DNA from: Bugula neritina
Lineage: Eukaryota > Animalia > Bryozoa
Assembly (NCBI GenBank): GCA_964035545.1
Contig: CAXIUT010000233.1
Location: 1-18,628, forward strand
DNA: 18,628 nt
Direction: 5' to 3'
Under the pieces are notes generated by a model, which was not told where the DNA came from, did not search any database, and worked only from the letters and a program-made list of their open reading frames with translations. Below are positions 1 through 17,525 of this stretch, piece after piece. Position numbers and translations under genes: made by a program. The number at the start of each line of letters is the position of its first letter. Positions within the stretch are counted from its first letter, which is position 1.

Positions 1-94
1 CCCAACCCCAACCCCAACCCCAACCCCAACCCCAACCCCAACCCCAACCCCAACCCCAACCCCAACCCCAACCCCAACCCCAACCCCAACCCCA
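1..94 (+). repeat. Left telomere, (CCCCAA)n
   Basis: Perfect C4A2 hexamer array at the very start of the window, matching the Tetrahymena-type ciliate telomere repeat in 5'-end orientation. Confidence 0.98.
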
Positions 95-4866: not shown

Positions 4867-6744
4867 TCAAACAGAAACAGCTACTTCCATCTTCTTTAAT
4901 TTTTATATTATAGCTTTGCTTTTTCTCTCAATTATTTTGGTTTGACTGAGGACGATTGATCTCAATAGTGGTAAATAAGGTTTATGATCAATAATTAGAC
5001 TTAAACTATGTTCTGTCAGTTGATTTTGAGATAAATTTAAACTTTGTATATGTCTAAGAGAAGGCAGTATTTTTGCTATTCCATCATCTGTCAACTTATT
5101 TCGTATTAATTTCAATGTTTTTACCTTTGTATTATCTTTCATTAGCTCTATTATTTGAATTATCATTGTATCTCCTAATTCAGCATTTGTCAAATCAACT
5201 GTCTCAAGACTATCATGCATTATCCCATCGATAACTTTCTCATATTTCTCTGGTACTTTTAATGCTTTTACCTTTCTTTTTAAGTTGGGAGTATGAGATA
5301 CTGTACTTTATTTCATTATAAATTTTTATTTTGCAACTGGAACTGGAACTTTTCTCTTGATCAATGGTCTATTAGTATGCTATTTTGGCTGTTCTGTTCT
5401 GACACTGATAAAGCTATTATCTAGAATTTTAGATCCAACAGTTGAATTAACAAAAGAATGATCAAATTAACAAGCATCTAATAAACTTTATTCACTTTAT
5501 TGTCTTTTTAGGTTAGGAGATCTTTTTATTTCTTAAAATTAACAATTTGCTAACGTTTGCTTGTTTTCTTTTAATTCAAGTTTTTTCTTGTCTTCTTTAT
5601 TCTTGATAATTGAACATAAATTAAGTAAACTCGCTTGAAAACTAGAATCATTTATTTTAACAGTAAAATCTTCAATAACTTATACAGTCTGCAAATAGCT
5701 TTATTCTTGCATTTTTTGTAACTTATTCAAAAGTTATTTTCCTTAATTAACTATTTATTCTCTCTTTAAATACAAAGATACTGATCCTCCACTCTTTGTT
5801 TATTAACTTTATTTGATCACTTATAATGTATTTACTTCCCAACAGTCTATTGAAGTATAAATATTTCGATCTAACTCAAGTGATGATTGTAGTCTTTTTT
5901 ATATTTATTTATGAGTTTAATCTAGTTATTTGCAAATATTTTATTCAGTTTTAAGAAGGTCTTCAATCAATTTTTTAAACTTTTCATTAATCTATTTACG
6001 TAGACTTGAAGTTTTTACAACAAGTAGTTAAAGTAAGTCTTTTTAAATAGTTTTTTTCGTTACTTTTTACATGAAGTTAGTTTTTTACTCAAATAAAGTG
6101 ACAATTTGTTGATAACATTTTTTATTTTATCTTTCTATCTACTATATTCCTTTGAATTAATGACTTTTATGCTAACCAAAAAGAGCACACTTTGAACATA
6201 ACCTCTAAAAATCATTCATACATATCACTTAAATCGGTCTCTGATGCAGTAAACATACCTAACTTTCAACTTTTTTTTATTTTTAAGATTATTTTGATTC
6301 TTACAGCTTTTTAACTTCATCAACATTGCCAATATTCTTTTCACTTTCGTCCTCAAACTCTCCTTAATGTCGAGAAGTAGCACGATTTATTTATGAGATC
6401 AACTACTGTGCAACTGAATCTTCTTGACATTACTATTCTTTGTTAATTTTGGACATATCAAAAGATTCTTACCTCATAGATGAACTACTATTGTGACTAG
6501 TGTTTTTCTTGCGAGTTTATATTAATTTCAATAAAGCTAGATTTTTAGGAAGTTATTCAAGAGATGAAGGAATATTCATTTATTTTTGATCATCAGGACA
6601 AGTAAGTGTAGATTTTTATTCTTTAGATTCGATCAGAGTAGTCAAACAAAGATGACAAAAGGTATGTCCACAGCTAAGCAAGCGAGGAGGGTTATTTTAT
6701 CGGTATTATGAGGAACAACGAGGGCAAGTTAGTTATATCTCCAT
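4867..6744 (-). CDS. TRIM-like RING + B-box + coiled-coil protein with C-terminal LRRs (~625 aa)
   Basis: RING CPRC..PRLLSCGHTFCHLC..CPDD; B-box CLLHQRPIEVICMNDFERLCSKCALFGEHKSH; helical middle region; LRRs LKLIRNKLTDDG and LNLSQNQLTE. The 4903-5220 ORF in the track is its C-terminal part and reads through TAA to TGA at 4867-4869. Confidence 0.88.
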
Positions 6745-7067
6745 TTCTTATGGTTTTCTGTTAGTAAATAATAACAATTCTTAGAAACAAAACTTATTCT
6801 TACTTTCTAAAATATGATTACTTTTTGATTAAAGAATTATTTCCTATAATGTACAAGAAATAATAATAATAAATACTTATTCTAAAAAAACATTTAGTTT
6901 TTTATTTCAAAAAATAAATTATTGCTAAATGTTGTCTTAGGTGATTGAATTTATTGAAATGGGGTAACAACTGATTTAAATATGTATTTTTGATATTGAT
7001 AATATTTTAGTATAAAATTCATTATGAACTAGTATTAATTTTGTTTCAAATATTTTTCCATCATTTA

Positions 7068-8231
7068 TCATTAGTCTTATTATATTAATAACTTAATTGC
7101 CTCTTAAAGTTTTCTCTTAGTAACTTCAGGATCAATTACTCTCTTTTATACACTATTAAGCAATTAAACTATCTTTACCTTTCCCTTTGAAAATACTATA
7201 TCTTCAGCAATAGGACATAAAACAATAACAGGTTTATTTTTAGCTATACATCGATCAATTACTCCTTTAACTACTTTCCCTTCCATTGTTTGTCCATCAA
7301 ATTTGCCTTAACCAGTAATCACTAGATCAGCCCATTCTAATAGTTTTTAAAACTAGGTAATCAAAAAGATAAGATCGATTCCTCTCAATAGTTGAGCTTT
7401 TAGAAAAACAAGGCAACCAGCTCCAAGACCTCCAGCAGCTCCACTTCCTTATATCAAATTAGCATCTATTCCATATTTTTACTTAAATAAACGATTTAAA
7501 TTTTATAGTCCTTCATCAAGTTACTAAATCATTTTTTATGTTGCTCCTTTCTGTGGTCCATAAACTGAAGAACATCCATTTTGTCCAGTTAAAATATTCA
7601 TCACATCAGTATAAACATTTATCTTACTATTTATTAATAAAGACTCAATTTTTTTATCTTTCTGCTAAACATTTTTAATTTTTATGAGATTTTAAGCTAT
7701 CGGTTTAACTATTACTCCTTATTTATCATAAAATTAATATCCCAAAGCTGCAGCACATCCAATTCCTCCATCATTAGTAGCTGACCCTCCGATCAAAAGA
7801 TTTATTTTTTAATTTCCTCTTTTCAAACTATTCAAAACAAGCTGCCCTGTTCCGTATGTAGTTGCTTTAAGTGGATTTCTTTATTATTTAGATAGAAGAG
7901 GTAATCCTGAAGCTTTTGCCATTTCAATATATGATTCATTATTTTAACTTTAATAGTAACTTGCTTCTATATTTCTCCATAATGGATCATATACTGGACA
8001 ATTAATCCAACTTCCTTTTAATTTTGTTGAAATAGTTTCTAGCGATCCCTATCCTCCATCAGCTAATGTGATTATTTTAGATTAGCAATGAGTAGGAAGG
8101 TTATTTTTTATTACTGATCCGACTTCTAATGAAGTTAAAGAGAATTTATATTTATCTGGACAGATCAGAACTCGACGAACTGTTTTATCTATAGATGTTA
8201 AATATCGAATGTATGATGTTGTCATATACAT
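7068..8231 (-). CDS. glxK: Class I (GlxK/GarK-family) glycerate kinase (~387 aa, intronless)
   Basis: Family motifs VLICPDKYKFSL, LADGGEGS, IEMAKASGL, RNPLKATTYGTGQL, IGGSATNDGGIG, YGPQKGA, GSGAAGGLG and VITGEGKFDGQT. The start could alternatively be the ATG at 8225. Confidence 0.95.
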
Positions 8232-13568: not shown

Positions 13569-14645
13569 ATGCGCACCTTTAAGCCTAAAACCTACATAAA
13601 ATCAACATAAAAAACAGCCCAATACGAATGTTCAATTTGCAACTATATTGCATAAAAACCATATATCTGCAAAGGACGTTGCGGTCAAACCTACTGCTTT
13701 CAATGCATGAACTGCATCAAAAGAAATAACAACTAATGTCCCTTCAAGTGTTCAAAACCCTTCGACCTGATTGAATGCAAAGAAGTATAACTCTAATTCA
13801 AATGTCCTTTTAACCCACAATAGTGCAAATAATTTATTTTATCACTCAATTCGTTTTATTCTCACAGCAATTATTGTAAATACCTTCCTCTTAACTGGAA
13901 ATAAAAATAATAAAACTACAAACAGTATCGCTGCGATAAAGGACACAACCTTTTCTTTATCGATGGAGATGACATGGTTGCATTATACGGACACAGCTTT
14001 TACGAAGACATCCTCAACGCCATTTGCTCTGGCTGCAAAGACAAAGGATTATGCAGAACTATTTGCCCATAATGCAGCACTAAAGATAAATTTGTTCACT
14101 ATTGTACCACCTGTCGCATCACCCCCTGTACTAGAGCTACTTGTCTTTATGCGCATTAGTTTTCAAAAGAAGTCAATATAGCAACTACCAGAATTTGTGA
14201 TTTTTGTGGAACAGCTGCCCACTTGCTTGGTCCTTTCGTCTACATCGATAGATAGTGTAATTTTGATATTTGTTAAGCTTGTTTTGTAAAACTTCCAGAA
14301 GAGCATGAGTTGGTGCCTTTCAAGACATCAAAGGAAGTCATTGCTCATCTTCATAAGCCTAAAAGTAACTTCAATAATAATATAGATCATTATGGGTTTG
14401 GATATCAACAATACATCAATATGATTGGAAATGTTCAAAGTTAATAATCTGACTAAGATAATTCATCTAGCTTTTCTCTTGAAGAGATAGATAATCTTGT
14501 CATAGGTATCAATGGAGAAGAACACGCTTAATAAGAAAATGAAGAATAATAAGACTAGCATCATATTGGCTCAGAAAATGACCTTCATCTCGATGCTGAA
14601 TAAAATCATATCAACCTTAATTTATAAGCTGAAGAAGAAGAATGA
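13569..14645 (+). CDS. RING-like + multi-zinc-finger protein, paralog 2 (~358 aa)
   Basis: Collinear Cys/His pattern with 12369-13433 (shared CPFN, CRTICP.CS..DK, CDFCGT and DRECN.DICE.C) and an acidic tail. Confidence 0.85.
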
Positions 14646-14698: not shown

Positions 14699-15661
14699 TC
14701 ATAAAACTCTTTAAACTATCTCATGACCAACTACCTTCCTCTCCATCAAATCCGCCACCTCTTCTTCCACAAGAAATCCTACTGCATTTACAGGAATAGA
14801 TCTCAAACAAACTGTAAATAGTCCCCTTGTAAACCCTTTCAATCCATACTTCTTGTAGTTAACTAAAAAACAATCAAACATATTTCTATAAGTTTTATTA
14901 TCCAGATCTTGAGATTGGATCTTTGTCTTTATAAAATCTATTGGATAACCAAATATCCAAGAAGACAACCCAGCTATTCCACCAGCTATCATGATTTTTA
15001 GTTTTTATTGTAGACCTCCTTAATGATCATATTTCATCTTTTTTTTTATAATTTAAAAACTAGTAAAAAAAATACCCATAGCTAAAATCTATCTCACCAA
15101 AGTAACTCCAAAACCCAAATAAATACCTCTTATTCCATGTCTGTTAAAAATATCTCTCACTGCTTGACTTTATCCTTGATAATTTTATTTAGTAGTTCGG
15201 TCTTCTTTTTGCATTAAAATTCTAATATGGTCAGCCGGTGTCTATCTTAAGAAAAGTTTACAACTGAGATAGCACTGGGAATTCCAGTTAGAAGACTGGC
15301 CAGAAATAAAGTAGAATCTGATTATTTTCCATTTATTTTAGCAAGAACATTTCTAAAATAGCGATTAAAGCCAAATTGCATTGAGCATTGTAATCCATAC
15401 CCAATTAATGGAGATTTAGTTCCTTTATATTTTATAAAATACCTTTAACAAAAAGAAAGTACCTTTATAGAAAGAAAATAACCCTTCTTCCTCAAGAATC
15501 GTTTTAAATGATCTTATAAATCCTCGATATTTAACTTAACCATCATGTTCATTTACTTGTCTTAGTTTAATTATTTAAAAAGGTTGCATGACTAAAACTT
15601 GGGAAATACCCGAAAGCGCTCCTGAAACAAACGTTTTTAAATCTTCATCGAAGTTAAACAT
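14699..15661 (-). CDS. Mitochondrial carrier (SLC25 family, carnitine/acylcarnitine- or amino-acid-carrier-like), 300 aa; exons 15661-15463, 15422-15262, 15241-14699
   Basis: Three Px[DE]xx[KR] signatures (PFEIIK, PADHIR, PIDFIK), plus EEGLFSFYKG, GIRGIYLG and GLKGFTRG. The spliced length is 903 nt. Substrate specificity is inference. Confidence 0.93.
15242..15261 (-). other. 20-nt spliceosomal intron (GTAAACTTTTCTTAAGATAG)
   Basis: Removal gives SAISV|TPADHIR, restoring the frame and the second carrier signature. A 23-nt GTT donor would also be in frame. Confidence 0.82.
15423..15462 (-). other. 40-nt intervening sequence made of two abutting 20-nt GT..AG units
   Basis: GTACTTTCTTTTTGTTAAAG (15462-15443) is immediately followed by GTATTTTATAAAATATAAAG (15442-15423). 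Removing all 40 nt gives FYKG-TKSPLIG. Confidence 0.85.
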
Positions 15662-17439: not shown

Positions 17440-17525
17440 GGGGTTGGGGTTGGGGTTGGGGTTGGGGTTGGGGTTGGGGTTGGGGTTGGGGTTGGGGTTG
17501 GGGTTGGGGTTGGGGTTGGGGTTGG
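17440..17525 (+). repeat. Telomeric repeat (GGGGTT)n, right chromosome end or interstitial tract
   Basis: Perfect 86-bp G4T2 array, the complement of the tract at 1-94 and in 3'-end orientation. Confidence 0.97.

Follow-up and report, generated by a model that had tools for sequence, protein, structure and literature searches.

A conserved tandem pair of 20-nt introns with no exon between them in a mitochondrial carrier gene of a ciliate

The window (i.e., the whole stretch of DNA that was analyzed, 18,628 nt) comprises contig C242 in its entirety; the assembly to which it belongs measures 216 Mb. On its minus strand, positions 14699-15661 encode a mitochondrial carrier, whose coding sequence is interrupted at two sites. 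At the site nearer the 3′ end of the gene lies one ordinary intron, while the site nearer the 5′ end is occupied by two 20-nt units that directly abut each other. From the start codon to the stop codon, the parts of the gene are:

15463..15661, minus strand: exon 1, with the ATG at 15661-15659; it ends with ...TTC TAT AAA G, phase 1 in a Gly codon, and the N-termini of the orthologues align with it
15443..15462, minus strand: U1, the 5′ intron unit GTACTTTCTTTTTGTTAAAG; 20 nt, with GTA and AG ends and a T at position 15 (-6), which is window position 15448
15423..15442, minus strand: U2, the 3′ intron unit GTATTTTATAAAATATAAAG; 20 nt and fully canonical (GTA, A15 at window position 15428, T16, and AAG)
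15262..15422, minus strand: exon 2, which begins with GA ACT AAA TCT CCA... and encodes TKSPLIGYGLQ...
15242..15261, minus strand: the ordinary single intron GTAAACTTTTCTTAAGATAG; 20 nt, with A15
14699..15241, minus strand: exon 3, which encodes carrier repeats 2 and 3, with the TGA stop at 14699-14701

Read on the minus strand, the site of the doubled intron is TAT AAA G/GTACTTTCTTTTTGTTAAAG/GTATTTTATAAAATATAAAG/GA ACT AAA TCT CCA, exactly as it was given in the initial annotation. Excision of 15423-15462 together with 15242-15261 yields a 300-aa ORF, whose product contains three tandem Mito_carr repeats with the PX[DE]XX[KR] signature. All three repeats are matched by Pfam PF00153 above the cut-off (15455-15640, 15032-15241, and 14738-14995), and the first of these matches ends at the doubled intron. 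When both units are kept, the ORF stops after 136 aa, and when either unit alone is excised, it stops after 154 aa. Thus, exactly 40 nt must be removed from this site, as had been claimed. An exact-protein look-up with the stop-free C-terminal ORF returned no record.

Other means of restoring the reading frame were also considered and rejected. No other GT..AG pair of length 3n+1 is found at the site. A -1 ribosomal frameshift with U1 retained would lack a canonical slippery site at the required point. We noticed that the last 20 nt of exon 1 (15463-15482, minus strand, GTTATTTTCTTTCTATAAAG) are themselves intron-like, with A15 and an ATAAAG end, but with GTT in place of GTA. This exon-end unit, U1, and U2 are three consecutive 20-nt units that are open in one phase, so that the frame is kept whichever single one of them is retained. 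Splicing of the exon-end unit with U1 or U2 kept as coding sequence would be in frame, but it would require a non-GTA donor and would give a poorer match than the conserved FYKG.

The contig that carries this gene starts with (CCCCAA)n at window positions 1-94, contains a (GGGGTT)n tract at 17440-17525, and uses only TGA as a stop. Given these telomere repeats and the sole TGA stop, C242 is a somatic, telomere-capped mini-chromosome of a ciliate inside a host assembly. The (GGGGTT)n tract of C242 is followed by 1.1 kb more of sequence up to the contig end, and several internal G4T2 tracts are also found on other small contigs (i.e., C10, C11, C14, and C15). These internal telomere tracts could be alternative chromosome ends, or several mini-chromosomes could have been joined during assembly. 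The nine large contigs (C1-C9), in which the carrier genes are exon-split and follow the standard code, belong to the host, and the majority of the small contigs (C10-C321) are AT-rich, telomere-bearing ciliate DNA. A few contigs (L033, L034, and L038) have 43-50% GC and long standard-code ORFs and are bacterial in appearance. The assembly is, in sum, a mixture of host, ciliate, and bacterial-looking contigs. It should be noted that the ciliate locus is present in sequencing runs labeled with three different organisms.

In four carrier paralogues (the window gene, L001, L003, and L005), the acidic position of the PX[DE]XX[KR] signature is occupied by TAA or TAG. In the window gene, the codon is a TAA at 15576-15578, within PF-TAA-IIKLR, and the L051 orthologue has a Glu codon at the same site. 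The stop-like codons at an acidic signature position and the Glu codon of L051 suggest that TAA and TAG encode Glu, which would fit a peritrich-type code.

In three DNA runs, which come from two studies, contigs span the 40 nt without gaps, and the doubled unit is therefore not an assembly artifact, a possibility that the initial annotation had raised. Over 1416 nt, the contig of one of these runs shows zero differences; the assembly may have been built from this run, and the independent support consequently comes from the other two runs. The runs that hold the locus are DNA runs whose contigs show no joints at the site, and an exact search of the metagenome contigs found neither a spliced nor a half-spliced form. 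A second search of the runs brought in more non-RNA holders of the locus only, and it revealed sequence variants within 30 nt of the doubled intron; other strains are represented by runs X2, X3, and X14.

The local intron rule was derived from a census of ~195 kb of ciliate DNA, which included the window and further loci. At the junctions of long coding ORFs, 15 GTA..AG candidates were 20 nt long, compared to 0-5 at any other length. In a census of coding flanks, 21 candidates were found at 20 nt versus 6 in the null, and no length besides 20 nt exceeded its null. When the motif GTA-N-A(-6)-NNN-AG was counted by length, 211 instances were found at 20 nt versus ~100 ± 12 at each other length from 12 to 69 nt. 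This excess corresponds to about 110 introns in ~195 kb, all of them exactly 20 nt. No intron class was visible in the length count at 19, 21, 22, 40, or 60 nt. Of the length peaks that had been proposed at 20, 40, and 60 nt, only the first is thus found in the ~195 kb. Likewise, the proposed ~20-nt ruler stands as far as the strict 20-nt length is concerned, but one orthologue with 20+22 nt and the lack of a peak at 40 or 60 nt speak against the proposal that longer introns come as multiples of 20. Naive GT..AG length counts are distorted by a 29-bp tandem satellite, GTATTGATTTTATTCTATCATTAATAATA, which is found in L032 (C11) at ~5321-7496.

All 32 confident introns begin with GTA and end with AG. 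At position 15 (-6), which is presumably the branch point, 28 of the 32 have an A and none has a T, and the count of 20-mers with a T at -6 does not rise above background (78 observed vs. ~97 expected). Both U1 and U2 have the 20-nt length and the GTA/AG ends of this class, while A15 is present in U2 and absent from U1. The PWM score of U2 is 11.8 and that of U1 is 8.0, compared to a median of 12.3. U1 is intron-like throughout except for the T at -6, which makes it non-canonical at the presumed branch site. The initial annotation was therefore right that the two units match the local introns in size, ends, and T-richness, but the match does not extend to position -6 of U1.

The closest paralogue in the same genome, on C137, is 45% identical to the window gene and has a single 20-nt intron, GTACTCATTCATACACTCAG, at the identical codon and phase (FYKG / T..PLIGYG). 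In the alignment of carrier paralogues that are more distant, the site is continuous and holds no intron. When the stop-free C-terminal part of the protein was used to scan metagenome contigs, orthologues were found in three further lineages. They share 60-69% aa identity, and each has a complete carrier ORF after splicing. The units that they contain at the site of the doubled intron are:

L051/L052/L053: 5′ unit GTACATCTTATGTGTTGTAG, 3′ unit GCATTCTATTTCTTATTCAG (20+20 nt)
L055: 5′ unit GTAATCAAGAAATGATACAG, 3′ unit GTATGTATTATATGAAATAAAG (20+22 nt)
L056: 5′ unit GTATTATTTAATAAATAAAG, 3′ unit GTAAACTATCAGTAAATCAG (20+20 nt)

A comparison with related ciliates had been suggested as a check, and its outcome is clear. 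In 4/4 lineages (the window, L051, L055, and L056), the first unit is exactly 20 nt and is followed by an AG/G(T/C)A junction, the C being the GC donor found in the 3′ unit of one lineage. In the window, the junction is AAAG/GTAT at 15443/15442 and has the AG/GT form of a recursive splice site. The orthologous 3′ units retain G.A at the 5′ end (with the A at position 3), the A at -6, and the AG. At the free positions 4-13 of U1, the mean identity across the lineages is 32%, which is the random level for the composition. The probability that AGG[TC]A occurs by chance at a fixed place in intron-like sequence is ~6e-4 per lineage. Given this probability and the recurrence of the motif at the same place in three other lineages, the junction goes beyond chance.

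The second intron site of the gene has a single intron in every case, with a length of 20-22 nt among the lineages and 21-22 nt in the relatives. Thus, indels do occur in these introns, and the strict 20-nt length may be a trait of this species alone. Given that the junction and the 20-nt U1 are kept, that the interiors are random, and that indels are possible elsewhere in the gene, the internal 3′ and 5′ splice sites are under selection. Neither a recent accident nor a dead gene is compatible with these facts. In L051, U1 also has T15 and U2 has the GC donor. With these two changes, the internal sites seem to be decaying in the L051 branch, where removal in one step would be a fitting explanation. 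In a protein tree rooted on the paralogue, L051 branches first, followed by the window gene and then by L055 and L056 together; the root is weakly supported and does not decide whether T15 in U1 is ancestral or reflects two losses.

Since the C137 paralogue has a single intron at the site, it is most likely that one intron at the ancestral position was doubled before the four lineages split. The proposal that the extra unit was gained at an existing intron junction agrees with the presence of one unit at the same codon and phase in this paralogue. U1 and U2 are identical at 12/20 positions, and U1 and the last 20 nt of exon 1 at 13/20, both of which are within the range of random intron pairs. 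The latter value is ordinary because the end of exon 1 itself looks like an intron. No duplication signal is found in either similarity, and the duplication is therefore deduced from the paralogue rather than seen in the sequences of the units.

A second putative zero-gap case was identified in the same genome. At C281:14353-14412, three canonical 20-nt units (GTATTTAAGTAGATATTTAG, GTACAATAATTGACATAAAG, and GTATTTACTAGTTAATAAAG) follow one another with zero gap; all three of these candidate units have A15, and the flanks (within 14333-14430) are exon-like. A separate pattern of near-zero-gap units, AG-N-[20-nt intron]-NN-GTA, has 13 matches in four small contigs vs. ~1 expected by chance (C305:19174-23872, C209:14365-15145, C147:61522-61639, and C164:40342), and the sequences of these units are diverse. 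Extension of the C209 array by one unit at a fixed 20+1 spacing found no match.

Taken together, the observation of the initial annotation is confirmed, in that the locus holds a real and conserved tandem pair of minimal introns that directly abut each other, while its interpretation as a whole is partly supported. We propose, with a probability of roughly 0.6, that these are tandem minimal introns at one ancestral position, each of which would be removed in a 20-nt splicing reaction of its own. It is probable that both internal splice sites are functional, and sequential splicing is likely. In the proposed mechanism, the spliceosome would recognize introns of one fixed size (i.e., 20 nt that start with GTA, end with AG, and have an A at -6), and the doubled site would have been kept as two units since before the divergence of the four lineages. 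The two 20-nt reactions could take place in either order, with each ligation recreating a splice site for the other unit. If U1 were removed first, exon 1 (...AAAG) would be joined to GTATTT... and the donor of U2 would be recreated. If U2 were removed first, the acceptor of U1 (...TTAAAG) would be joined to exon 2. Such a process would be recursive splicing at an AG/GT ratchet point on the smallest scale. What is inferred in this mechanism is the use of both internal sites, the order of the two reactions, and the way in which U1 would branch without an A at -6.

Because U1 has a T at -6 in the window and in one orthologue, the 40 nt could also be removed at this locus in one step. A single 40-nt intron would then use the GTA donor of U1 and the branch A and acceptor of U2, and the internal AG/GTA would be an unused relic of the duplication. 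As one intron, the 40 nt carry GTA, A at -6, and AG, while U1 alone is without the -6 A. Consistent with this alternative are the weakening of both internal signals in L051 (T15 in U1 and the GC donor in U2) and the slight variation of the total length among the lineages, which is 40 or 42 nt. In some lineages, the doubled intron may be on its way to being removed in a single step. We consider a single 40-nt intron to be the main alternative, but less likely than two separate reactions. No 40-nt class is visible among the ~110 introns, and a neutral relic would not be expected to keep the junction and an exact 20-nt U1 in four lineages whose intron interiors are saturated. Moreover, the intact canonical donor of U2 would compete with that of U1 and would leave an unspliceable U1 behind, and the three zero-gap units on C281 are fully canonical.

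It is very improbable that a disabling insertion of 20 nt beside a normal intron has broken the gene, or that the extra 20-mer is an assembly error. U1 is indeed without the -6 A, and its retention shifts the frame so that the ORF stops after 154 aa. Both units are, however, found gap-free in the three DNA runs of the two studies, and the orthologues of the other three lineages, which are 60-69% identical and whose full-length ORFs are intact, have the site doubled as well. This shows that purifying selection has long acted on genes that depend on the removal of all 40-42 nt. Removal from the DNA itself, with the 40 bp as a TA-bounded internal eliminated sequence, can almost certainly be dismissed: an 8-bp direct repeat, TATAAAGG, does flank the 40 bp with a spacing of 40, so that excision between its two TA dinucleotides would give the same product, but the 40 bp are present on the telomere-capped somatic contig and in all three DNA runs, whereas a Paramecium-type internal eliminated sequence is absent from somatic DNA, and what the orthologues conserve is the GT..AG boundaries of the units and not the TA ends.

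If tandem minimal introns are indeed spliced separately, recursive splicing would operate at the lower size limit of the spliceosome. Such small-scale recursive splicing would be conserved across species and would occur in a housekeeping gene, and a ruler-type, fixed-length recognition of introns would become directly testable. We further suggest, as a tentative extension held with slightly less than even confidence, that if the spliceosome measures a fixed 20 nt, an intron could be duplicated exactly with immediate neutrality, as two independently spliced introns and a zero-length exon would result. Tandem units would then persist over long times with obligatory sequential splicing and could seed arrays of ~20-nt introns with 1-2-nt exons elsewhere in the genome. 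Duplication of a whole minimal intron would in that case be a route of intron gain without cost. For the annotation of ciliates with tiny introns, it would follow that a 40-nt gap should be modeled as two introns.

The tandem pair can be compared with several known systems. In fungal stwintrons (i.e., spliceosomal twin introns), an inner intron interrupts a splice signal (donor, acceptor, or branch) of an outer intron. As in stwintrons, one interruption of the gene would be cleared here by two consecutive splicing reactions. The units of the carrier gene lie side by side, however, and removal of either leaves the other unchanged. The sequence reading gives no nested solution, as the only in-register GT..AG 20-mers are U1 and U2, and a stwintron was therefore rejected.

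Tandem genomic duplication at AGGT is a model of intron gain. The present locus resembles it in that an extra GT...AG unit adjoins an existing splice junction and in that the paralogue keeps a single intron, but the sequence similarity that would prove such a duplication is gone here, as neither U1 and U2 nor U1 and the exon end are more alike than random intron pairs. Tandem genomic duplication is listed among the mechanisms of intron gain in PMC13685798.

The same paper describes introns of 15-16 nt in Stentor and Blepharisma and narrow length distributions in Paramecium and peritrichs, and, as far as it was searched, it contains no description of tandem zero-gap introns (PMC13685798). The introns of the present ciliate resemble these tiny introns in their very narrow length distribution, GTA donor, and fixed A near the 3′ end. 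The literature that was searched mentions no ciliate in which minimal introns follow each other in tandem with zero gap.

Recursive splicing with zero-nucleotide exons (i.e., at ratchet points) has been described in long introns of Drosophila and vertebrates, as well as in the 375-nt BOT1 intron of Cryptococcus neoformans (10.1101/224170). In these cases, long introns are subdivided into units that measure from hundreds to tens of thousands of nt. In contrast, each unit of the carrier gene has the full make-up of a minimal 20-nt intron, in a genome where all introns are 20 nt. The likeness to recursive splicing lies in the 3′ splice site that directly abuts a 5′ splice site (AG/GT) with no exon between them, in the regeneration of a splice site that the removal of one part would bring about, and in the conservation of the junction in relatives.
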